Part shown: in pieces, positions 1,491 through 61,661 of the stretch
How the letters are laid out: every line of letters starts with the position of its first letter
How positions within the stretch are numbered: position 1 is the stretch's first letter
NCBI GenBank assembly: GCA_964106645.2
Contig: OZ067042.1
DNA: 64,000 nucleotides
From: Podarcis pityusensis
Lineage: Eukaryota
Reading direction: 5' to 3' (one strand)
Notes under the pieces: model-generated
The model's input: only the letters and a program-made list of their open reading frames with translations
What the model was told of the DNA's origin: nothing
The model's database searches: none
Position numbers and translations under genes: made by a program

Positions 1491-2948
1491 GTAAGGCACA
1501 TGTTTGTTAGCTTGTCCAAAAGAAATTTATCTTGACTTTATTCTGGATCCACTGATAGAATTATAATGGAAATAGCATTGGTTGTGCAACAAGTTTCTGC
1601 CAGTGCAGCTGTTGTGTTTGGTTCCTCTGCTGTGCAGCCTTCAAACTCAGCCGTCCAATAGCACAAAAGGAAGATAGCATTGCATACAGACCTATAAATG
1701 CACTACATACTAGAAATGAACCTTACGCCTGTTCCACATGGGGGGGGAATCTTATAATTTAAACTTTTCCTTTTCCTTTTAAATTGAATTCTGAATATTA
1801 AATTCCAAGAATAGCTGTTAATTATATTTTATATTCATAACCATTGTCAGTCCCAAGTGGATGTTTACTTCAGTTAAATTATTCACAGTATTCATTCACG
1901 AGTTAATATAAGCTTGTTTGTTAAGGGTGGAGAAACAACACAAGTGGATTGGGTGGGGCACTCTACCTGACTTCCACTGGTTATGATCGCTAAGATTTGG
2001 CCAACTGGACATGATTGGCTTCTATTTTTAAAAGAGCAAATATTGGGAACCTGTAGTGCAGCCTATTTTAATTGGTATGTGTGTATGTTTAATTTCTGTT
2101 ATCAAGTGGCAGCAAGTTTGTGCATTTTGTATGTGTCTGCCTTTAGGGATTCTCGAAATCATGGTAATATTTTTTTTTACCTATAAGAGGTCAAATTAAA
2201 TGCTAGTATGTGGATTACTCAACTTTAGTAGATAGAAAAGTATAATGATTGTTAACAAGGAATAACGTTTTAGGTTTCAAAAGAAGGTGAACCTAGTACA
2301 GTAGTGTGTTCTCATTCACTTTCTATTGACTTCTGATCATGCTGCATCTGTAAGAGGCAGGTGAGTGAGTACCTGTTTAAAACATGGTTAGAGAGCTAGA
2401 GAGAGAGAGATTATGATGCATTTCCCTGGCTTTGTCTCCTCCCATGTGGGAATATCTCAAGAAAGGAACCAGTGAAATAAAGTTGACTGCCACACTTTTG
2501 TATCCAGTCCAAACTGTGAGGCTGGGCCTTGCCTTAAATACTTAATACGCCAGTGCCTTCCAAACTCCTCCCCACACCTCATGGACCGCTTGTACATTGC
2601 TCAGGGTCTTAGCAGACTACTTATTTTTCTGCCTATTGTAGTAATTGTAATGCACTAGTCTAGATACTGTTTATGTTCAAGTGTATTTTCGTTTCTGCCT
2701 TCATTTCTTACAGATTGTATTTTATTGTGGTACAATTTGAATTCCGCTAAATTCAAATTGTAATTAAATGAAAAACGATACGAGAAATAAAAGAAGCAAT
2801 AAATATACAATTAAAATTTAATGAATACTTAATGCGATGGATGTGCTGTCTCTGGTCTTCGAGTACAAAACCACAGACAGCACTGCAGACACTTGAGCAA
2901 AGCTCCCAGATCACAATTTGGGAATCCTCATCATAGTTTGCTCCCCCT

Positions 2949-2951
<3 letters not shown>

Positions 2952-3010
<59 letters not shown>

Positions 3011-3011
3011 A
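2952..3011. repeat. Compound microsatellite (CT)n(CA)n
   Basis: Seen directly. Confidence 0.95.
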
Positions 3012-3246
3012 CTTGGACACCAGAGCTCACGTTTCTTTTTATAGTGCAGGAGTGGGGAGCGTGTGGCCCTCCAGATATTGCTGAACTACAGTTCACATCT
3101 GGACCAGGCTAGGCCCTGATGGGTGGTTGTATCCAACATCTTGGGCTCTCTGTCTTTGGTTTAGTTTTAAGGCAAAATTGCTGTATTTTGAGAGAAGTCG
3201 TCTACTGATTGGATTGAATTTTTAAACAAACCTGTATATCTTCTTC

Positions 3247-3260
3247 CCACTAGATGGCAG
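3247..3260 (+). promoter_or_regulatory. Candidate CTCF core motif
   Basis: CCACTAGATGGCAG matches the CCACYAGRKGGC core. Motif match only. Confidence 0.4.
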
Positions 3261-4398
3261 ATGAATATAACTTTTTGCTTGTTAGATGTCATAAGATCTT
3301 TGAGATCTGTTTTTACTTGTCACAGCTTAAAAGTTAATGCTTATTGTATTACATTACTGTAAATGTCACTGAAAGTACAATGAGAAAACAGAAGGTGAGG
3401 AAGATTTGGCAGCAGGGGGGAATCTTTTGACATTAATTTCCTTCTGTTGGATTCCATTATCTTTCTTTCATTTAGATTAAATCAGACTAATGGTTCTGCT
3501 CCACAGTTCTGTGGGCCAATCAACATAGTGCTCTCAGCATAATTCAATGAGGGTTGATAAAATGTGCAGTGAGGCACATTTAGCATGTCACAAGCAGTCC
3601 ACTTCTAGAGCGTTTATTACCTGATGGTGTGTATGGGGCCAAATTATTGGTACACAGTGAAACCATTCTGCGACCACATTGCCACAAGATTAATTGCAGC
3701 CAGAGTGAGGCAACTCATATTTCATCACAAGGATAGGTGAATCTACAAGTATACACACTCCAAATAAGAAATTGTCTCTTAGATTACATCCAGTATTGCG
3801 ATTTGTGTTGGTGATTCGTTGACATTCCAAGAACAGCATTATTAAGCACATTTCAACTAACTTAAAGGCATTTGACTTCAATGTTAGTTGGATCCACAGC
3901 ATGTACACCCAATTAGGGATCTTAGATATGCACTTTTTCCCTACCATGCCTACACCATGCACATGGCATGTACACACACCTGTGTCACAAGCTGTCTTTT
4001 CCATTGTTTTTCATCTGGGGCGGGGAGTAAAAAAGAGTCAGAATTCTTACAAACTCGGTATGTAAGTGCGCCTGGACATTTATTTTATTGTTTGCATTTA
4101 TATTTTTTTTTAAAAAATATATTTATTGGGGTTTACAATAAAAATAAATATAATGAACAGTATAACAAATATCTTAACATAATTTCACATTTTCTTTGGA
4201 CTTCCTCACATCTCCCGCTCCCACTTTCATCATTATAACTTTTTACCAGCAATTTATTATCTTATTTGCATTCTTATATCCCATCTATGTATTTATAATC
4301 TTATAATTCTCAAAAAGGTTTATATTTTCTCAATCTCACTTATTATCTTAAATCTTCTAAGTTAGTGGTGCTCAATTATTTATGATCTAGCATCCTGC

Positions 4399-7300
4399 TT
4401 AACATTCACTCAAATTACAATGTTTTTGTAAATAATTCTTAAATTTCTTCCAGTCCTCCTCCATCTTCTCTTCTCCCAGGTCACGGATTCTGCCGGTCAT
4501 CTCGGCCAGTTCCATATAGTCTATCAGTTGCATCTGCCATTCTTCCAGTGTGGGTAGATCTTGAGTTTTCCAGTGCTTTGCGAGAAGTATCCTTGCTGCT
4601 GTTGTTGCATACATAAAAAATGTCCGGTCCTTCTTTACCACCCCTTGGCCGACAATACCCAAAAGAAAGGCCTCTGGTTTCTTTGTGAAGGTATACTTAA
4701 ATACCTTTTTCAAAATAAAAAAATTCCTTCCTGTAGCACCTTAAAGACCAACTAAGTTAGTTCTTGGTATAAGCTTTCGTGTGCATGCACACTTCTTCAG
4801 ATACCTCTTCTTCAGATACTTCTTCAGATGCATGCACACGAAAGCTTATACCAAGAACTAACTTAGTTGGTCTTTAAGGTGCTACAGGAAGGAATTTTTT
4901 TATTTCGACTATGGCAGACCAACACGGCTACCCATCTGTAACTGATACCTTTTTCAGTTCATTATAAATCATTTCCCAGAACGCCTTCACTTTAGGGCAG
5001 GTCCACCAGAGGTGGAAGAATGTTCCTTCACTCTCTTTACATTTCCAGCACTTATTATCAGACAGGTGGTATATTTTTGCAAGTTTGACTGGGGTCATAT
5101 ACCATCTATATATCATTTTCATTACATTTTCTTTCAAAGCATTACATGCAGTAAAATTCAACCCAGTACTCCACAACCTTTCCCAGTCCTCAAACATGAT
5201 ATTATACCCAATGTCCTGCGCCCACCTTATCATAGCCGATTTCACCATTTCATCTTGTGTATTCCATTTTAACAGCAAGTTATACATCCTTGAAAGTACC
5301 TTAGACTTTGGTTCTAACAGTTCTGTTTCTAGTTTCGATTTCTCCACCTGGAACCCTAGTTTCTTGTCATTTTTAAAGACTTCTTTAATCTGAGCGTAAT
5401 GTAACCAGTCTCGCACTTTATCCTTCATTTTCTCCAAACTCTGCAATTTCCAGTTGTCTCCATCTTTTTCTAGTATTTCCCAATATTTTGGCCATTTAGC
5501 CTCCATATTGGGTCTTTTTCGGGCCTTAGCTTCCAAGGGTGAAAGCCACCTTGGAGTTTTGTTTTCCAACAAGTCTTTATATTTTGTCCAGACATTAAAC
5601 AGTGATTTTCTGACAATATGGTTCTTAAAGGCCTTATTTGCTTTAACCTTGTCATACCATAAGTATGCATGCCATCCAAAAGTATTGTTAAACCCTTCCA
5701 AGTCCAACACGTCAGTGTCTTCAAGAAGTAGCCAGTCTTTTAGCCAGCAGAACGCTGCGGCCTCATAATACAACTTTAGATCTGGCAGGGCAAAGCCCCC
5801 TCTTTCTTTCTCATCAGTTAATATCTTAAACTTAATTCTGGGCTTTTTGCCCTGCCAGACAAACTTAGAAATATCTCTCTGCCACTTCTGAAAGCACTCC
5901 GTCTTATCCAAAACCTGAAGTGTTTGAAACAAAAACAACATCTTTGGCAATACATTCATCTTGATAGCAGCAATTCGGCCTAACAAAGAAAGTTTCAATT
6001 TTGTCCAACTGTCTAAATCTCTCTTAATTTCTGCCCAACACTTTTCATAGTTGTCCTTAAATAGACTTAGATTTTTTGCTGTTATGTTTACCCCTAGGTA
6101 TTTTACTTTTTTAACCACATTAAGTTCTGTCTCTTTCTGAAACCGTTCTGACTCTGTATCTGTCAGGTTTTTCCCCAAAACCTTAGTTTTCTGTTTATTT
6201 AATTTGAATCCCGCCACCCGACCAAAATCATGAATCAGTTGTAATACTCTTTTCGTACTAGACTCTGGCTCCTGCAGGGTCAAAACCAGGTCATCTGCAA
6301 AGGCTTTTAATTTATATTGTTTCTGTCCGACCTGAATTCCTTCCACCAACCGGTCCCCTCTAATCATATTCAATAGCACTTCCAGAACCGAAATAAATAA
6401 CAAAGGGGAAATAGGGCAACCTTGTCGTGTTCCTTTTTCAATTTTAAACTCCTCTGTAACCACATTGTTAACTATCAGTTTAGCTTTCTGCTCTGAATAT
6501 ATCGCCTCAATCCCATTCTCAAAACCCCGTCCCACTCCCATTTCTTTTAAGTTTCCCATCATAAATTTCCAGGAAATGTTGTCAAAGGCCTTCTCCGCGT
6601 CTATAAAAATTAAAACTGCTTTTGTGTTTATATCTGTTTGCAAAAGTTCCAAAATGTCAATAATGTTCCTTGTGTTAGCAAACAAATGTCTGCCTGGGAG
6701 AAAGCCTGCCTGGTCCTTGTGAATTACTTCATTTAAAACTTTTTTAAATCTACTTGCCAAAATGTCTGCAAATATTTTGTAATCCACATTTAAAAGAGAA
6801 ATGGGACGATAGTTCTTAAGTTGTGTCTTTTCAGCTTCCGTCTTTGGTATCAATGTGATAAACGCTTCCTTCCACGACTCCGGTGCCCTCTTCCCCTCCA
6901 TAATTTCATTGCTGACCTCCATCAAAGGTTGTATCAAGTAATCTTTTAATGTCTTATAGTACTTGGAGGTCAGCCCATCTGGCCCTGGAGATTTGCCCAA
7001 TTGCATGTTCTGAATGGCCTGTTCAATCTCTTGTCGTGTTATTTTACAGTTCAGGATTGTCTTATTTTCTTGTGACAATTTTGGTAATCCATTTTTTGCC
7101 AAAAATTGTTTAATCTCAACTTCGTCTTGCGGCCCTTGCGTGTATAATTTTTTAAAATATCTCTGGAAACACTTTCTAATGTCCACGGGATTCTGGATGT
7201 TTCTTCCTTCAATCTCTAAATTTGTAACCGTATTTAATCTTTGTCTTCTCTTCAACTGCCAAGCTAGCAGTTTCCCACATTTATTCGCCGACTCAAACGT

Positions 7301-8383
7301 TTTTTGTTTCATTAATTTGACCTTCCACTCTATTTCCTGATTTATCAATTTAGAATATTGTGCTTGATAGAGTTTGATTTCTCTCAGAATTGGCTGTGAC
7401 TTCGGGTTTAATCTTAGCTTCTTCTCTAGTTCTTTTATTTTGTCCAGAATCTTATCTTTTTTCTCATTTTGTGTCCTTTTCTTTACTGCATTCTGTTGTA
7501 TCAAGAATCCCCTCATAACGGCTTTACTTGCGTCCCAGACGATTCTTTTTTCCACCGTGGTGTTCATATTTATCTCAAAATAGTCCTTCAAAGCTTTTTG
7601 GGCCTTCTTGGTGATTTCCTGATCTCTGAGTAAATTGTCATTCATCTTCCATCTAAAAGAGCCGGTTGGTAACAGTGTCATGTCCATCTTTACTGCATTA
7701 TGGTCGGAGCAGGTCTTTGGGCAGATTTCCACTTTTCTAGCCTTAGGTGCCAGGCCTCTAGATATCCATATTTGGTCGATTCTTGTCCAGGTCAGTTGGG
7801 CTTCAGAAAAGAATGTTCCCTCTCTTCCCAGGGGGTTCTTTGTCCTCCAGATGTCAATCAAATCCATATTGTCTGTCATTTCAAAAAAAGTTTTAGGTAG
7901 TCTGCCGTCTTTTGTAAAATTTTGACTTTGTGACTTTTCCATGTTGGTTGATACTACCCCATTCATGTCTCCCATCATGATGATGTTGTTATAGTCCAGA
8001 TAATCCAGCATAGTCTCATGCAACTTCTTGTAGAATTCCGATTTCCCTTCGTTTGGTGCGTAAATTCCTAATATCAAAAGTTTCTCTCCTTGGTGTTGTA
8101 TCTCAATTGCCAAAATTCTTCCATGTTCATCTTTAAATAAGAATTTAGGTGACAGGCTCTCTTTCGCATATATCACCACACCTCTCTTCTTTACTCTGTC
8201 CGAAGATATAAATTCCAGGCCCAATCTTTTGTTTATTAACACTTTTCTGTGGAGCCTTGTCACGTGAGTTTCCTGTAAACAAATAATGTCCAATTGTTCT
8301 TTTTTTAATATATGAAATATTTTCTTCCTTTTTTCCGGAATGTTACAGCCATTTATATTCCAGCTCAAAAGTTGCAGAGACAT
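4399..8383 (-). CDS. L1 ORF2p (APE endonuclease, reverse transcriptase, Cys-rich C-terminus), interrupted by an insertion at 4713-4944
   Basis: SWNING, LQETH, GDMN and SDH (endonuclease); YRPISLLN, DAEKAFD, RQGCP and FADD (RT); CWKC..HLWWTC. Removing the insert and one TSD joins ...ELKKV to FKYTFTKK... and gives one 3741-nt frame (1246 aa). Confidence 0.93.
4713..4944. mobile_element. Penelope-like element pseudo-LTR fragment in inverted-repeat arrangement, nested in L1 ORF2
   Basis: Exact 12-bp TSD ATACCTTTTTCA (4701-4712 and 4945-4956). Perfect 77-bp inverted arms at 4713-4789 and 4829-4905. Motifs GTAGCACCTTAAAGACCAAC and CAGACCAACACGGCTAC are recognised from memory as reptile Penelope pLTR. 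Confidence 0.8.
4766..4805 (-). ncRNA. Minimal type I hammerhead ribozyme (Penelope pLTR type)
   Basis: Minus-strand RNA GGUAU-CUGAAGA-A-GUGUG(CAUG)CACAC-GAAA-GC-UU-AUACC. Helix I is GGUAU/AUACC, with CUGANGA and GAAA cores, helix II and a palindromic mini helix III (AGCU). Confidence 0.75.
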
Positions 8384-8398
8384 CCTGAATAAATCTGA

Positions 8399-9430
8399 TT
8401 ATTTCTCTAGGGGTGGTATCTTATTCACAGGATCTTCAGGTTCCACAGGTGCCGGTACCGCCGGTGCTCCAGGCCCAGAAGGTAGTTCAATTCCTTTTTG
8501 GAGGTCCTCTTCGTATGTAGACAGAAATTTGTCTCTCTCTTCCGGTGTTCTAATTTTGACCTTCTTCCCTCTAAAGGTAAAGGATATTCCTTGGGGGAAT
8601 TCCCACCTGAAAGCGATTGAGTTGCTCCTTAATAATTTAACAAGTTCAGAATAGGCGGCTCTAAGGTCCAACAGTTGTCTAGGAATATCTTTGTAGATTT
8701 CAATTCTTCTGTCCAGAATGTCCAGTGACTTTCCGTAGTGTAGGCCCAAAATCTTGTCCCTTTCCTCCTTTGATCTCAATGTTATCAGGCAGTCTCTGGG
8801 CCTCTCCTTCTTTATGAATCTTCCAAGCCTGAAAGCTGACACAATTTTAAAGTCCTTTTCCTCTAAATTCCAGAACTTGGAGAATTCTTTAGTTAAAAAC
8901 TCAGCTAGGTTGCCTTCTTCTGCTTCTTGTAACGACCTAATCCTTAGATTATTCTCACGGTTTCGCAGTTCTATCATAGAGAGATAAATCTGGTGTTCCC
9001 CCACTTGTTTGCTGAGTGGTCTTACCTCTTGTTCTAAGTTTTCTAGTTTTTGACTAGTGTCCTCAGCCAATTTCCGATTTTCTGCTGTGGCCTCCGTCAA
9101 ATGTCCAATTGCCTGTGTGTTCTGTGCAACTTGTCCAGTTAATTTATTTAGGCATTCTGTATTTTGATCAATCTTAGCTGTTTGCTCATCTGCTTTCTTA
9201 TCCAAAGCTTCCAATTTTTCATAAATTTTCTCTAGAATAGAAGCAGATGATCCTGAGGCCATATCTTCCAATTGTAACTGCTCTATTTCTCCCTCCTTTG
9301 CCTGTGGCAGAACGGCTTCTTCTACTTCTGAAGGCAGAGTAGGTACAGATGATCTACGTATCTGCGAGGCTGAGGTTAGGGTTGTCAAAGTTGTTTGTCT
9401 AGTTCTTCCTCTTCTTCTTGTGCCACTCAT
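8399..9430 (-). CDS. L1 ORF1p (coiled coil, RRM, CTD), 343 aa, intact
   Basis: Heptad-rich coiled coil followed by RENNLRIRSLQE, AFRLG, PRDCLI and IEIYKD, typical of the L1 ORF1/Transposase_22 family. Confidence 0.92.
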   Translation of the reverse strand: MSGTRRRGRTRQTTLTTLTSASQIRRSSVPTLPSEVEEAVLPQAKEGEIEQLQLEDMASGSSASILEKIYEKLEALDKKADEQTAKIDQNTECLNKLTGQVAQNTQAIGHLTEATAENRKLAEDTSQKLENLEQEVRPLSKQVGEHQIYLSMIELRNRENNLRIRSLQEAEEGNLAEFLTKEFSKFWNLEEKDFKIVSAFRLGRFIKKERPRDCLITLRSKEERDKILGLHYGKSLDILDRRIEIYKDIPRQLLDLRAAYSELVKLLRSNSIAFRWEFPQGISFTFRGKKVKIRTPEERDKFLSTYEEDLQKGIELPSGPGAPAVPAPVEPEDPVNKIPPLEK

Positions 9431-10466
9431 TCCAACGTTATCTAACAGTCAAGGTCACGCTGAGTTATTCCCATGGGAAAAAAGAGGCCCAGAGAGAACA
9501 AGCGGCCGGGAAATAGAAAGTAAATGTAAAGTCACTGTTTTAAATCTCCAATCCTCTAGAGGGAGCTTAAGATGTCTTTAGGGAAGAATTCTAATGTAAT
9601 TTAGAGTCTAATTTAATGTCCAAGAACCTTCAAATACAAATATTTAGCAGAGTTGATGTTAACAGTCACTTTGTTTCAAACAGTGCTTACTGGTCTTCAA
9701 AAGATGTTTCAAAATAGCAGGTCCAAATACCCTCAGATTGTTACAAGTTCTGATACACAATAGCCAAATCTGCAAAACTGACAGCTCAGTCTCTCAAAGA
9801 GCTCAGGCAGCTCCGGACCCTGGGTTTCTCCTTTCAATTGTAATTCCAATAGAAGAAAGATAAATCAAATGCAAATAAATAGTTCCAAGTCATAAACTTA
9901 AAAACTTTACTTTGTATAGCAGATTCAGTGGGTGCTCAGATCAATAAGGTTGAAAGTTCTTTTTAAGCCTCCACTCCTCCAGCTCTTTGCTTTTTAAAGT
10001 TCAATGGCAGCGGAAGACGGACTTCCTGTTTCCACGTCTCTCCGCTTTCAGCCAAATTCAATATTTTAAATTTCAGCTTTTAGTCTCAGATTGAAGTATT
10101 TCAGTCTTTACTCACAAATAAGTTGTTGTTTTCTTCCGGATCCAAAGTTTGCAGGAAAAGGGATCAGCGCTCACCGGCAGCAGCAGCGCGGCTTCGCTCC
10201 GCAGATCGTGAAACGGCTCTCAGCGCCGCAACCCCCCTCTACGTTCCGGAGCCCCTTACGGGGTTCCTTTACCGCTTAGGGGGTTGCTTCTGGCGCCCAC
10301 CGAGCCTCAGGACCACAGGCTCTTGCTGCCTGTGGGTTTCCAACGTGGGTCTCCGCTTCGCCGTAGCGGACGATCCTTTTCTGCGGAGCCTCCTCCTCGC
10401 TAGTGGAAGAGGACCGCCATTGCCGTTCGCGCCGCCCCCGGAAGTCCCTATTGTTTGCATTTATAT

Positions 10467-10645
10467 CCCACCTTTCCTTTAAGGAGCTCACAAGGCTCTC
10501 CCCTTCTCCATTTTTATCCTCACGACAACCCTGTGAGGTAGGTTAGACAGAGCTAATGACTGGCCCAATTCATCCAGTGAGTTGCATGGCTGAGAAGATT
10601 TGAAACTTGGGTCTCCTAGGTAAGAATTCACCTCTACACCACCTT
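10467..10645 (-). mobile_element. Old MIR/CORE-like SINE (target of the L1 insertion)
   Basis: ATCCTCACGACAACCCTGTGAGGTAGG...TGACTGGCCCAA...ATTTGAAACTTGGGTCTCC. A related copy lies at about 37455-37640. Confidence 0.7.
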
Positions 10646-21150: not shown

Positions 21151-21207
21151 TGAGAATTTGAAATGCTTTTGTGTTCTGTCTGTGAACATTTAGTTACATT
21201 TCCACAG

Positions 21208-21353
21208 AAAAAAGAATGGACAGGAAATTCAGCCAGAGACCTCTTTCCCAAGCCGAAACCGAATTGTTCCTCCAGAATTCCTGTATCGTATGGACTACAA
21301 GAAAATTGGAAAATGTGTTATTATAAACAACAAGAACTTCAAAGAAAGTACAA
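21208..21353 (+). CDS. CASP7: Caspase-7 coding exon 2
   Basis: KKNGQEIQPETSFPSRNRIVPPEFLYRMDYKKIGKCVIINNKNFKEST; CAG acceptor, GTATGT donor, phases 2/1. Confidence 0.93.
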
Positions 21354-22077
21354 GTATGTTTTTCACATCATCTTAATATAACTCTGGGTGGTACTTCTGT
21401 TAGAGAGCAAGAGCTGTACGCGAGAGCAGTGCTTTTCAAGACAATATGCTAATATCTAGGGACACTCTTCTCCCATATCAATCAGCCACATTTGATGGGA
21501 ACAAGGGAAAGTAACTTTTCTATTGCTAGTTTCATATTTTGAGACCCTGCTTTGCATGTTCCTTTTTGGCCTTCAAACATAAAGTTAAAAGCTTTCTGTT
21601 AGAAAGGCTTTTGTGCTTTAAACGTCTGACATAACCACCTTGCCTATAGTGTTCTCTTATGAGGGGCTTTTTGCAGTTTTAAAGGGATATGCTGCTGATA
21701 ATGTATTTTTATTACTATTTCTTAGCATGCTGCTTTAGTGTTTACTTTGCCCGGGGGGGTTGTATTTTGCTCTGAGCAGCCTTGAACTCTTCTAACGGAA
21801 GTGTGGCCATACCCAGAGAATGACTGAGCCCACAAAAAGCGCACCGTAAAATATTGATAGTCTTTATGGTGCCACAAAACATTGCTGCAGCAGTCTCGAC
21901 TGGGCCCCCTCTCTGGCCATTGCTTTGGTCGTTGTGAATATAACAAGCTGTTTCTGAATACTGCTCAAAGGTTTTAAATTTTAAAATCATTTTCTCTCCC
22001 ATTGGGCATTCACACAACCTATAATAATAAGTACGCCTCTGCACAGTCAGCATCAATCTTCTTGTGTTTCTTATCAG

Positions 22078-22206
22078 ACATGGGTATACGAAATGGCACT
22101 GATAAAGATGCTGGTGACCTGCTAAAATGTTTTCGAAGCATTGGATTTGATGTTTCCATCCATAATGATCTCACCTGTGAAGCTATGGAGAATAAACTCA
22201 AGGAAG
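22078..22206 (+). CDS. CASP7: Caspase-7 coding exon 3
   Basis: MGIRNGTDKDAGDLLKCFRSIGFDVSIHNDLTCEAMENKLKE; 129 nt; AG/GT. Confidence 0.95.
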
Positions 22207-22510
22207 GTAACAATGACCACCCTGTTTAGATAGTTTGCTGGTTAACTTAAGAAGACCAATTGTGTTCTTCCTTTGGTCATTTGAGAAGCTGAGCTCTTAA
22301 TACATAATTTGGGTAGTACTAAACGAATTGGGTTGTTGTCAGTGTAGCACTAAGGAGATTTGTTTCTGTTTGCTCAATAGGACCATCTCCCCTAATTCAC
22401 TGTTCTGGGGGTTCTCCTGACCATCTGGAGAAGATTTGGAGGGTAGCGTTCCATTGCACTAGCAGGCATCATTGCACTGGCTTCCTCTAGCACAACAATT
22501 TCATTGAATA

Positions 22511-22748
22511 CAGTGGTACCTTGGTTGTCAAACTTAATCTGTCTGACTCTCGAAACAGTTCGAAAACCAAGGCGCAGCTTCCGATTGGCTGCAGGAGCTT
22601 CCTGCACTCAATCAGAAGCCACAGAAGCTGTGTCGGACGTTCAGCTTCCAAAGAACGTTCGCAAACCGGAACACTTACCACCAGGTTTGCGGCATTTGGG
22701 AGCCGATTTGTTCGGGAGCCAAGCCCTTCAACAACTAAGGTACCACTG
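22511..22748. mobile_element. Tc1/mariner (Tigger-like) MITE
   Basis: TA-CAGTGGTACCTTGGTTGT ... ACAACTAAGGTACCACTG-TA: TIRs with a TA TSD. Confidence 0.85.
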
Positions 22749-23015
22749 TACAAACGCTTCCTAGTGATCAGTTCAGGCTTAGTAATGCTTAGAATTGAGC
22801 CATTGGAAACAGTGGGACTAATTTAAGTTCCATTGATTTCAAAGGGTCTCTTTTAAGCATGACAAAGATCCAACCCAGTGGGAGTTATTTCTGAGTAAAC
22901 ATGAATAGGATTGATGTTAGCCCTTCTTTTAATTGTGCAGAAAAAAGACTTGCCACGTATAGTTTTTGTTAAGTGGCATTTCCATTATGTAAGAGGAAAT
23001 ACATTTGATTTGCAG

Positions 23016-23191
23016 TTGCCCTTGAGAGCCACAGTGATGCTGCTTGTTTTGCCTGCATATTATTAAGCCACGGAGACGAGGGGTTTATCTATGGCACAGA
23101 TGGAGCTATGGCAATAAAGGAGTTGACAAGTCTTTTCAGAGGAGACAAGTGCCCAAGCCTCATTGGAAAACCTAAATTGTTTTTCATTCAG
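23016..23191 (+). CDS. CASP7: Caspase-7 coding exon 4 (catalytic His)
   Basis: [58 protein letters not shown]; 176 nt; AG/GTAAGG. Confidence 0.96.
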
Positions 23192-23918
23192 GTAAGGAGG
23201 TATTTGATGCAAGCTAGCATGTGCTGGGTAGAAGCTGTTTTCCAAAGTTTAGCAGCAGGAAGCTAGAAGTGGAAACAGTGGTCTAAAATGGTTGCTGAGC
23301 AATGCCTAAGGTGAGGTAGATACGAGAGATACTTGGTCAGCTTTTCTTGAGAATGATTCTCAATAGTTGTCTTTTTTCCTGTTTTCTCAATTTGTGTCTC
23401 AAACACTACAACCCACTTTCATTTCCTTTTATTGTCCTCTCCCTTCTTTTGTAGAAGATGTTACATTATTTGCCCTAGAGTAATTTATTTGTTGTTAAAT
23501 TAATTATTAATTAAAAACTCATTTAAAAAAATTCTCATGTATTGAGTATTTTGGATAACTGCACAAACACAAAATGTCAGTTTAAGGCCAATATTAGGCA
23601 CTTAATAAATAATGAATAGCATGCTCACCAGCAATGGCATGGCATGGCCTATCTGTGTATTCATACAAATGAATTGCAGCTAATATATTTAAGCTGTAGC
23701 CCTAGGACAAATATGTTTTTCATAGGGTTGATGCTGCTGATCCTAGTATAGGTCATTAACGTACCATATTTCATTTACAAGGTTCAAGTATATGTTCAGT
23801 TATAATGTGAATCTGTTTCAGTTACAAAATTATCATAAAATTCCATAACTCCTGTAAATTGTATGTGATTTATGTGTACACTGAATTATTTTGCTCACTG
23901 TTTATATCATGGTTTCAG

Positions 23919-24057
23919 GCCTGTCGAGGTTCTGAATTTGATGAAGGGATTCAGACAGATGCAGGTTCTCCAAATAACGATCTGGAAATGGATGCCAATC
24001 CAGGATGCAAGATTCCTGTAGAAGCAGATTTTTTGTATGCATATTCCACCGTGCCAG
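23919..24057 (+). CDS. CASP7: Caspase-7 coding exon 5 (catalytic Cys, intersubunit linker)
   Basis: [46 protein letters not shown]; completes QACRG across the splice. Confidence 0.96.
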
Positions 24058-24321
24058 GTATAAATGGGAAAAGTGACAAACTTGACATACAAATGAGTGC
24101 GAGTAAAACAAAGTGTCACATATTGGGGAAAATTTAAGCATTTGTCAGCTGAAATTAAATAACAATGAAATGCTATTTTATGGGGAAATGTATTTTCTTT
24201 ACATTGAATTATGAGCCAGTCTTGAAAGTTTGAAGCACTGGACTTTATATTTTCACATATCAAGTTTGTTTCCTTCTGAAATGTATATAGGCTTTTCAGT
24301 GTTCTAGTTTGTGTGTATAAT

Positions 24322-24914
24322 CAGGGGTGAACAAAGGCTAACCGACACCCGGGGCGGAGCAAACTGCTGGCTGCGCACGCGTTGTGCCGCTACGCACGAC
24401 GCATTCATGGCATTGTTACGCAGGGCACATATGCAGCATCGCTACGTACAGCACATGCGTGCAACACTGTGCATGCGTTGTACGTAGCGGTTTGCTGCCA
24501 GTGCCGCTTGAATGCCGTATGGATGGTGGCGGGATCCTCTGTTCATGGCTGCAGCCGCGAACAGAGGATCCTCCACGTGCGGCGACAACGGAGGGATCCC
24601 AACGCCGTCCATACAACGCTTGAGCGCCGCCGGCAGCAAACCGCTATGTACAGCGCATGTGTGGCATCACTACGTACAGCGCATGTGTGCGACACCGCAC
24701 ATGCGTTATACGTAGCGGTTTGCCGCTGGCGCCACTCGAACGCCGTACAGACGGTGGCAGGATCCTCTGCTTGCAGCTGCAGCCGCGAACGGAGGATCTT
24801 CCACATGTAGCTACAGTGGCGCAATGGCTGCTCACTCCGCCACACCCGGGCTCACCCCCCCCCCACGGCACCCAGGGCACACCACCACCACCCGCCCCCC
24901 TTGTGATGCCACTG
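24322..24914. mobile_element. Putative hAT-like non-autonomous element with internal CpG-rich nested inverted and tandem repeats
   Basis: Imperfect termini CAGGGGTGAACAAAGG / CCTTGTGATGCCACTG. 8-bp flanks TGTATAAT / TATATAAT. Internal period of about 228 bp. Confidence 0.6.
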
Positions 24915-25099
24915 TATATAATTAGTGCAAACGATCGAATGTGAGCAACAAGAACAGCTCCTCTTGACATTCTGCTGCTAAGCCATGGATTGACTCAGCA
25001 TGGCATGCAAACCCAGGCTCATGGTTTAGCTCTCTCCATATAAACCATGTGCTGTAAGCAAGGCTTATCCTATGGTTTATAGCTCATGGTTTGTCTGGG

Positions 25100-25347
25100 A
25101 GCTTCTGCCAACCTAGCAGTTCGAAAGCACATCAAAGTGCAAGTAGATAAATAGGTACCGCTCCGGCAGGAAGGTAAACAGCGTTTCCATGCGCTGCTCT
25201 GGTTCGCCAGAAGTGGCTTAGTCATGCTGGCACATGACCCGGAAGCTGTATGCCGGCTCCCTCGGCCAGTAAAGTGAGATGAGCGCCACAATCCCAGAGT
25301 TGTCCACGACTGGACCTAATGGTCAGGGGTACCTTTACCTTTACCTT
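25100..25347 (+). mobile_element. Sauria SINE, 5'-truncated
   Basis: ACCTAGCAGTTCGAAAGCAC...AGATAAATAGGTACCGC...(ACCTTT)n tail; TCTGGGAG repeated on both flanks. Confidence 0.88.
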
Positions 25348-25957
25348 ATCTGGGAGAGCTAAAGCTCTCCCAGATAAAGGTTTAGATAAAATACTAAGCC
25401 AAACCATAACTTAGGGCAGCACAGCAGCAGAATGAGCAGAGGAGGACCAAAGCAGCCGCAATCTCCTCTGTGGGATCCCACACATTTGTTGTACATGCTA
25501 AACTGTGGTGCCAACGATACCAATGTCCTCTTTTATTTTTAGTTATCTTTCTCTATCTCAGCTAGCTGGAAAAGTCTTAACAATTCCATATTTTTAATAA
25601 TTTGCTATTAAAATGGAAACTGATTTTTTTTAAAAAAAAAAAAGCCTTATTTAATGTGTATTATGATGATCCAGGATCATTTTAGTTGACACAGTCCAGC
25701 CCTATGCACTTTTTGAGAGTGTTGCATGTGCATGGGTTTCCACAGCAAGCACTCACACTCTTGAAAAAGCAAAATGCTTTGCTTGCCTCTTCAGCAATGC
25801 AAATGATTGTGACAAAAACCTATAGACCCAAATTGGTTCCCTCCTGCACTTGTACGTATATGGTTTGGATTATGACCCTATTTGTAATGTGCAGTGAATA
25901 TCTCTTTTGCCCTTCATTATGGTAAGGAGGCTTTTTTCCCTTTGCTCTCACTTACAG

Positions 25958-26181
25958 GTTATTATTCCTGGCGGAATCCAGGGAACGGCTCCTGGTTTGT
26001 GCAATCTCTTTGTGAAGTTCTGACTAAGTATGCCAAAGAGCTGGAGATCCTGCAGATGCTCACCATGGTTAACTACAAAGTAGCAAGAAACTATGAATCG
26101 CAGTGTGATGACCCACGCTTCAATGGGAAGAAACAGATTCCTTGTGTGGTCTCCATGCTAACCAAAGAAGTTTACTTCTGA
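25958..26181 (+). CDS. CASP7: Caspase-7 last coding exon (small subunit)
   Basis: [22 protein letters not shown]...[17 protein letters not shown]; CAG acceptor at 25955-25957. Confidence 0.96.
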
Positions 26182-37290: not shown

Positions 37291-38052
37291 TTAATATGGT
37301 TTTAAATATATGTATCATTATATCACATTTGTCTACCCATTTAAAACCTCATGTGATTCTGTTTTATATAACTAGTTAAAATAACCAAGCTTTGTGAGTG
37401 TGCTATATCGGAAAAGGAATGTACTAGAATGCATTAGGCTGCCATGTGGCGTAATTTAAACAAGGTGGAATATATAGTTCTCTCCCTCCTCATTTAATCC
37501 CCACAACAACCCTGTGAGGTAGGTTGAGCTGAGAGATAGTGACTGGCCCAAGATCACCCAGTGAGTTTCATGGCTGAGCAGGTGTTTGAACCCTGGTCTC
37601 TCAGCTCCTAGTCCAACACTCCAACCACTATACCACATTATATTACACATTACATGCTTTTTATGACATGCACAAGATGGCAGTTTATTTCATCTATTAT
37701 AACTTACATGATTGTAAAAACCTGTATTGAAAGGATCTCAAGAATCAACCACGGTTCATAATGGTGCTACAATATATAGACATATTTAAGTTGAGTTATG
37801 TTTCATGTCTCTGAGGTTTTTTGTATCTATGGATTGGGGTAAGAATTTGGGACAGACAAGTTCTAATTTTGCACTTGCTTTTCCCATTCTGGATTATGTA
37901 AGACCAAAACACTTGTTTAGAAATGACATGCAGTAAAAACAGTCTCATCACGCGCAAGAACATATTTTACAATGCTAGATCATTGCCTATGACATCTTTT
38001 AACATGATGAGCCACACAGACTGTGTACATCTTTCATATATTTACCTAACAG

Positions 38053-44320: not shown

Positions 44321-44685
44321 AAGGTAAAGGTAAAGGTACCCCTGACCGTTATGTCCAGTCGCGGACGACTCTGGGGTTGCGCGCTCATCTCGCTCCATAG
44401 GCCAAGGGAGCTGGTGTTTGTCCGCAGACAGCTTCCAGGTCATGTGGCCAGCATGACTAAGCCTCTTCTGGTGAACCAGAGCAGCACACGGAAACACTGT
44501 TTACTTTCCCGCCGGAGCGGTACCTATTTATCTACTTGCACTTTGATGTGCTTTTGAACTGCTAGGTGGGCAGGAGCAGAGACCGAGCAATGGGAGCTCA
44601 TCCCGTCGTGGGGATTCGAACCGCCGACCTTCCGATCGGCAAGCCCTAGGCTCTGTAGTTTAGACCACAGCGCCACCCGCGTCCC
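44321..44685 (-). mobile_element. Sauria SINE, full length
   Basis: (AAAGGT)n at the left end and GCGTCCC at the right; TSD TGC(A/T)AGTGATTA. Confidence 0.92.
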
Positions 44686-61461: not shown

Positions 61462-61661
61462 NNNNNNNNNNNNNNNNNNNNNNNNNNNNNNNNNNNNNNN
61501 NNNNNNNNNNNNNNNNNNNNNNNNNNNNNNNNNNNNNNNNNNNNNNNNNNNNNNNNNNNNNNNNNNNNNNNNNNNNNNNNNNNNNNNNNNNNNNNNNNNN
61601 NNNNNNNNNNNNNNNNNNNNNNNNNNNNNNNNNNNNNNNNNNNNNNNNNNNNNNNNNNNNN
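61462..61661. other. Assembly gap (200 N)
   Basis: Run of N. Confidence 0.99.

Follow-up and report, generated by a model that had tools for sequence, protein, structure and literature searches.

In the 64-kb window (the whole stretch of DNA that was analysed), a young full-length L1 has its ORF2 split by a 232-bp insert. The insert probably arose in a single retrotransposition event, from a short non-coding element that bears a hammerhead and is of the Penelope-like element (PLE) type. The nested insertion is real and young, and it is an ordinary transposon-in-transposon event, with a known kind of element inside another known kind, which is well explained by published Penelope biology.

Structure of the insert

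The insert is bracketed by an exact 12-bp direct repeat, ATACCTTTTTCA, which the repeat finder placed at 4701-4712 and 4945-4956. The two copies constitute a target-site duplication, the left one encoding residues LKKV of L1 ORF2 on the minus strand and the right one being 100% identical to it, while a microhomology of 2 nt at the left insert junction gives the duplication a length of 10-12 bp. The target site is 75% A+T. Inverted arms of 80 nt with 99% identity were called at 4710-4789 and 4829-4908; their lone mismatch sits within the 3 nt overlapping the target-site duplication, and without these the arms (4713-4789 and 4829-4905) form a perfect 77-bp inverted repeat. Between them lies a spacer of 39 nt (4790-4828) with three near-copies of CTTCTTCAGATAC, spaced 15 and 12 nt apart, a sequence that equals the 5′ half of the hammerhead (UAUCUGAAGAAG) and is triplicated on the minus strand. 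A sequence-only reading of this DNA had described the 232-bp insert with its exact 12-bp duplication, as well as the perfect 77-bp inverted repeat around a 39-nt spacer of three near-copies, and the repeat coordinates bear out both descriptions.

Read in the hammerhead sense, the arms are two copies of one element with their 3′ ends outward. The minus-sense copy of this mini-element (4713-4805) possesses the canonical 5′ end and a complete hammerhead, and its 3′ end, which reads ...UUUUUUUAUUU and adjoins the left duplication, is the short reverse-transcription start. The plus-sense copy (4829-4905) is the perfect complement of 4713-4789 and is 5′-truncated inside helix II, lacking the CUGANGA box; it is extended outside the right arm by a one-sided 'tail' of 39 nt (4906-4944, plus strand), which includes an AC-rich stretch and for which the left side has no counterpart, making the insert asymmetric. 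The end of the plus-sense copy at 4944 is 113 nt after the helix II loop ATG (4832). There is no ORF within the 232 bp, a stop being found 10 codons past that ATG, and BLAST against the 64-kb window revealed no second copy of the insert or of the L1.

The host L1 and its split ORF2

The L1 body spans 4104-10448 on the minus strand with a 9-nt poly(A) at 4104-4112, and it is flanked by its own exact target-site duplication of 18 bp (4086-4103 and 10449-10466). The ORF at 4928-8383 (minus strand, 1151 aa) comprises the N-terminal 1146 residues of ORF2 followed by SVTDG and a stop derived from the insert, with Pfam matches to Exo_endo_phos (5.5e-14), an APE-type endonuclease, and RVT_1 (3.3e-38). 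Its closest relatives are ORF2s of Podarcis muralis, with an identity of up to 93% and full-length members of 1246 aa, which places the window in a lacertid lizard. An open frame of 343 aa (8399-9430, minus strand), 15 nt upstream of ORF2, is described as ORF1-like by its position, since Pfam gave no significant match for it and only weak hits of the coiled-coil type. Together, the APE-type endonuclease and reverse transcriptase (RT) of ORF2, the upstream ORF1 (by position), the poly(A), and the target-site duplication constitute the hallmarks of an L1, which can fairly be called young and, apart from the insert, intact.

The insert enters ORF2 16 residues past the Cys-rich motif, and the frame terminates as ...LKKV-SVTDG-stop, so that L1 ORF2 now halts after residue 1146 of 1246. 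The C-terminal 100 residues severed by the insert are still open at 4402-4700 (minus strand); the open frame 4402-4713 on that strand gives a gapless alignment (76% identity) with residues 1143-1246 of P0004, a Podarcis muralis ORF2 of 1246 aa, and uses the same stop position. Both pieces share one frame once the 244 added bases are subtracted, and the 1146 residues retained and 100 cut off sum to 1246. The earlier reading had proposed that SVTDG and a stop replace the last ~100 aa past the Cys-rich motif, that excision would restore an ORF2 of 1246 aa, and that the L1 is otherwise intact, all of which agree with the reading frame, the gapless C-terminal alignment, and the sum of the two same-frame pieces. 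It had also proposed a very recent transposon-into-transposon event: the nesting is evident from an insert with its duplication inside a full-length L1 with another, and the perfect arms and exact duplication show youth without dating the event.

As known from the human element, an L1 ORF2 protein cut in its C-terminal region is unlikely to support retrotransposition, and we infer that this L1 copy is disabled and no longer makes a competent ORF2 protein. A separate pair of sequences of ~120 bp with 80% similarity, at 10497-10615 and 37479-37600, is probably a SINE-like repeat; the L1 landed in the copy at 10.5 kb, and its 18-bp duplication is therefore in the tail of that repeat.

The hammerhead motif

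A minimal hammerhead motif was located at 4766-4805 on the minus strand by a descriptor script and by published hallmarks. From 4805 to 4766 it reads GGUAU, CUGAAGA, A, GUGUG-CAUG-CACAC, GAAA, GC, UU, cut, AUACC. Helix I pairs GGUAU with AUACC over 5 bp (4805-4801 and 4770-4766) and is followed by the core box CUGAAGA (4800-4794), a bulged A between positions 9 and 10.1 (4793), and helix II, which is made up of GUGUG/CACAC with a CAUG loop and has a G and a C at its base (G10.1-C11.1; 4792-4779). The second core box GAAA (4778-4775) is followed by a palindromic GC (4774-4773) within AGCU (4775-4772), by U16.1 at 4772, and by U17, the cleavage-site base, at 4771, with the predicted cut between 4771 and 4770, all on the minus strand.

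CUGANGA and GAAA, the two core boxes, follow the type I order, with U and not G at H17. An extra unpaired base precedes the G10.1-C11.1 pair closing the long helix II, helix III is reduced to A15.1-U16.1 around a palindromic 15.2-16.2 through which two copies must pair, and helix I has 5 bp where 4-5 bp are expected. These features resemble the four hallmarks of Penelope minimal hammerheads, a base between 9 and 10.1, G10.1-C11.1, a palindromic 15.2-16.2, and a short helix I, which emerged from the survey of Cervera and De la Pena without being imposed by their search, and all four are present here (PMC4209133). That survey included reptiles, with no lacertid named, and described mostly solo dispersed copies, together with paired motifs that lie 100-700 bp from each other on opposite strands (PMC4209133). 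The helix II found here is, in comparison, a perfect 14-nt palindrome.

The descriptor script, which encodes the core boxes and PLE hallmarks and was composed after the motif had been seen, gave a single hit when both strands of the 64-kb window were scanned, compared with no hit in 200 shuffles. It detected no second complete hammerhead near 4766-4805; the single complete one is on the L1-sense (minus) strand, and the other arm holds only the 3′ half. The Rfam hammerhead families (types I, II, III, HH9, and HH10) had no match in 4400-5300 even at E<=10. The hammerhead-bearing Penelope structure named in the earlier reading is thus supported by the hallmarks, the target-site duplication, and the inverted arms, but with one complete motif only and with no Rfam match.

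As RNA, the insert folds into a single hairpin (about -150 kcal/mol, z = -22 vs shuffles), and a structure in which helices I and II are enforced is less stable than this full hairpin by about 37 kcal/mol. A co-fold of two hammerhead 40-mers favours an intermolecular helix II duplex and is uninformative about activity. Self-cleavage of this hammerhead is unlikely, because it has no helix III of its own (1 bp) and no nearby partner, because the hairpin is 37 kcal/mol more stable, and because the complementary arm is transcribed first and minimal hammerheads in the literature show poor cleavage even when dimeric (PMC4209133). The hammerhead in this copy is therefore most likely idle, and a silencing of the L1 through RNA self-cleavage, as previously suggested, finds no support in a lone motif without helix III and with a penalty of ~37 kcal/mol. 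Insertion in vitro did not require hammerhead cleavage (PMC11167929). That the 77-bp perfect duplex in L1 transcripts attracts dsRNA pathways could in principle occur, but silencing by dsRNA and RNA editing of the arms are both speculation.

Rfam matches of the insert to miRNA or sRNA models are of a generic long-hairpin kind and far below the gathering scores, and such an identity for the hairpin was dismissed on these grounds. For instance, the hairpin at 4750-4866 gave E values of about 1e-9 to 1e-10 against the plant and animal miRNA precursors MIR7993 and MIR2950, below the gathering scores, and copies of the repeat family of the insert could accordingly be mis-annotated as miRNA genes.

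Insertion signatures and the probable enzyme

Insertions of PLEs are characterized by strong 5′ truncation, by pairs in which an inverted 5′-truncated copy adjoins the 5′ end of its partner, and by a tail of 30-40 bp, often at only one end (PMC8557442). At this locus, an inverted 5′-truncated copy abuts the 5′ end of the other copy, and the one-end tail at 4906-4944 is 39 nt long. The Poseidon protein of Anolis nicks and extends both target strands, prefers AT-rich targets, and initiates reverse transcription at two internal start sites, the interval between which is the tail, with a start located 111-118 nt downstream of the stem II ATG (PMC11167929). The insert resembles Penelope/Poseidon-type PLEs in its inverted 5′-truncated copies, one-sided 30-40 bp tail, AT-rich target, and apparent both-strand priming, and its long start ~113 nt past the helix II ATG is placed as in Poseidon_Ac (PMC11167929). 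A minimal hammerhead is also common to the insert and to Poseidon_Ac (PAc) of Anolis carolinensis, in which it is laid out as CUGAGGA-U-helix II-GAAA-CG-UC; in both, one nucleotide is bulged ahead of helix II, helix II includes an ATG, and the core of helix III is a palindrome of 2 nt.

The insert differs from Poseidon_Ac, however, in having no ORF and a primary sequence that is unrelated outside the ribozyme core, where comparison by eye revealed no evident similarity, and its unit is a 92/131-nt mini-element with a seemingly discrete 5′ end 5 nt upstream of CUGAAGA, in contrast to an element of 2.7 kb. An ORF with RT and GIY-YIG domains is absent from the insert, and among the other ORFs of at least 130 aa in the window none contains a domain of either kind; the insert, being 232 bp without an ORF, is therefore at best a truncated or non-autonomous PLE copy. 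Pattern scans for the 27-mer from helix II to the cut site gave no match in metagenome and viral contigs, four 16-18-mers of the element were not found in the full-text literature, and nothing specific was found in the literature on Penelope in Podarcis.

Insertion of a hammerhead-bearing RNA by the L1 machinery instead of a PLE enzyme, with the inversion arising via twin priming, is improbable. Some L1 and SINE insertions are known to become inverted through twin priming, and these are, like the insert, inverted, 5′-truncated, flanked by a duplication, and primed from both target strands; L1s are clearly active in this genome, and a 12-bp duplication is inside the L1 range. Both sense copies lack a 3′ poly(A), however, and a TTTT/AA-like site with a primer end in a T-run is seen at neither nick. 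As a rule, twin priming yields two different, adjoining parts of the template, whereas both arms here copy the same 77 nt. The two 3′ ends lie 39 nt apart at internal start sites and match PLE internal initiation (PMC11167929).

Copies of the element in lizard contigs

The contigs of four public runs from three lizard species were aligned on 4300-5400. The insert sequence is commoner than the L1 in these contigs, about 1,800-4,500 of which fit both arms in each run. Many other genomic copies stop exactly at 4804 with diverse, unrelated flanks beyond, for instance in 47 loose-end contigs of run X1 and 60 of run X8, which points to a discrete 5′ end of the unit five bases upstream of CUGAAGA. 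Many joints connect 4796-4804 with the opposite arm at points that vary (4854-4918), and they represent inverted partners, elsewhere in the genome, whose 5′ truncation differs from locus to locus. The base at the cleavage site (4771) is U in both arms of this insert and C in most family members (contigs), and the sharing of the subfamily variant U17 fits one RNA source for the two arms.

The reverse orientation of the element, in which the CTTCTTCAGATAC repeats would be a 3′ microsatellite tail, needs variable 3′ truncation of partner copies elsewhere and would also place the hammerhead on the antisense strand; it was rejected on the variable joints and the ends at 4804. The same two features argue against cut-and-paste transposition, in which a transposase recognising the 77-bp inverted repeats would have moved a miniature inverted-repeat DNA transposon (MITE) or foldback element. 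The long, perfect inverted repeats with a flanking direct repeat, the short non-coding sequence, and the very high copy number in contigs would suit such an element, but the right inverted repeat is not terminal as in a MITE or foldback element and ends 39 nt inside, and the variable inner truncation points with many solo units ending at 4804 are a pattern of reverse transcription. A 12-bp duplication is not known to match any common transposase superfamily. With a hammerhead motif and a layout that are those of PLEs, a DNA-transposon origin is very improbable, and retrotransposition of a PLE-type element is preferred.

The empty site of the L1 (...GGAAGGTATATTTAA followed by ATACCTTTTTCA...) is read straight across by 12-28 contigs per run in all four runs; these uninterrupted contigs show that L1-family copies elsewhere have the empty site with one 12-mer, so the insert is lacking from other copies of this L1 family, as the earlier reading had anticipated. 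An assembly artefact, in which a palindromic chimera or a collapsed repeat was put in the L1 by the assembler, would suit the known trouble that PLE inverted structures cause in assemblies (PMC8557442) and the lack of any contig bridging the L1-insert junctions of this locus among those listed from the four runs, so that support for the assembly here is indirect. It has a very low probability on grounds of logic, since such an error would not leave L1 coding sequence exactly duplicated over 12 bp at both ends with both ORF2 pieces fully open in the same frame, and runs X1 and X2 (same organism label, different samples and studies) hold twice the share of the words of this stretch found in the other species.

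Proposed mechanism and source of the insert

Under the preferred PLE reading, the reverse transcriptase/GIY-YIG endonuclease of a PLE would nick the AT-rich site with a stagger of 12 bp, and the 3′ ends at both nicks would prime cDNA synthesis from a single kind of RNA. Synthesis at the plus-strand nick would start at the inner site, giving a minus-sense copy that ends ...UUUUUUUAUUU, and the minus-strand nick would start 39 nt further 3′, giving a plus-sense copy that bears the 'tail'. The two cDNAs would converge and be joined in the middle of the insert, one having reached the 5′ end of the element, where its first 12-15 nt would be triplicated, and the other having halted inside hammerhead helix II. 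The outcome would be two 5′-truncated copies with their 3′ ends outward, forming a perfect 77-bp palindrome with a one-sided tail and a 12-bp duplication.

It is possible, though somewhat short of probable, that the insert belongs to a discrete SINE-like family parasitic on the Penelope elements of lacertids, with an RNA of 92 nt (short) or 131 nt (long) and a sharp 5′ end. If so, the parasite family would be very abundant in several lizard species, and this one insertion would record in vivo both the priming on both strands and the two alternative start sites, which have so far been shown only in vitro with the Anolis enzyme.

The animal non-LTR retrozymes are another hammerhead-bearing group, composed of head-to-tail tandem units that each have a complete hammerhead (bioRxiv 10.64898/2026.07.22.740005). 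They are, like the insert, non-coding with a type I hammerhead; they derive from PLE pLTRs, as the insert probably does, and are absent from birds and mammals. In contrast to their tandem units, the two copies in the insert are inverted and have a single complete motif between them, so that RNA of unit length would not be released from this locus.

CASP7 and the surrounding sequence

Five caspase-7-like coding exons were recognised on the plus strand at 21194-26178, with the landmarks CVIINNKNF, GIRNGTDKD, LSHG..., and GSWF and the end MLTKEVYF-stop. All of them except the first have Peptidase_C14 Pfam hits, and their best matches among solved structures are to caspase-7, ahead of caspase-3. 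Motif searches did not locate the first coding exon or the 5′ UTR of CASP7. The L1 and its insert occupy 4.1-10.4 kb, and the insert is 16 kb upstream of the first recognised CASP7 exon. The strand that carries the hammerhead is antisense to CASP7; therefore, even if the site were intronic, the CASP7 pre-mRNA would bear the hairpin but not the hammerhead. The suggestion that the insert places a long hairpin in that pre-mRNA is not supported, with all recognised exons 16 kb downstream and the hammerhead antisense, and there is no evidence of an effect on CASP7.

Elsewhere in the window, a motif search showed near-identical translated stretches (...SRRSGTYLSTCTLMCF...) in the plus frame at 44513 and 57779, 13 kb apart, which are probably two copies of another interspersed repeat, and a gap of 200 N is present at 61462-61661.

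Significance

No new kind of system is revealed by this locus, and its value is mostly for annotation, as the insertion explains a split ORF2 in an apparently young full-length lizard L1. It also flags a very abundant hairpin-forming repeat that is able to break assemblies and to mimic miRNA precursors. Moreover, it illustrates cleanly, in a natural setting, the architecture predicted from recent biochemistry of a lizard Penelope enzyme, in which both strands are primed and the start sites are 39 nt apart.
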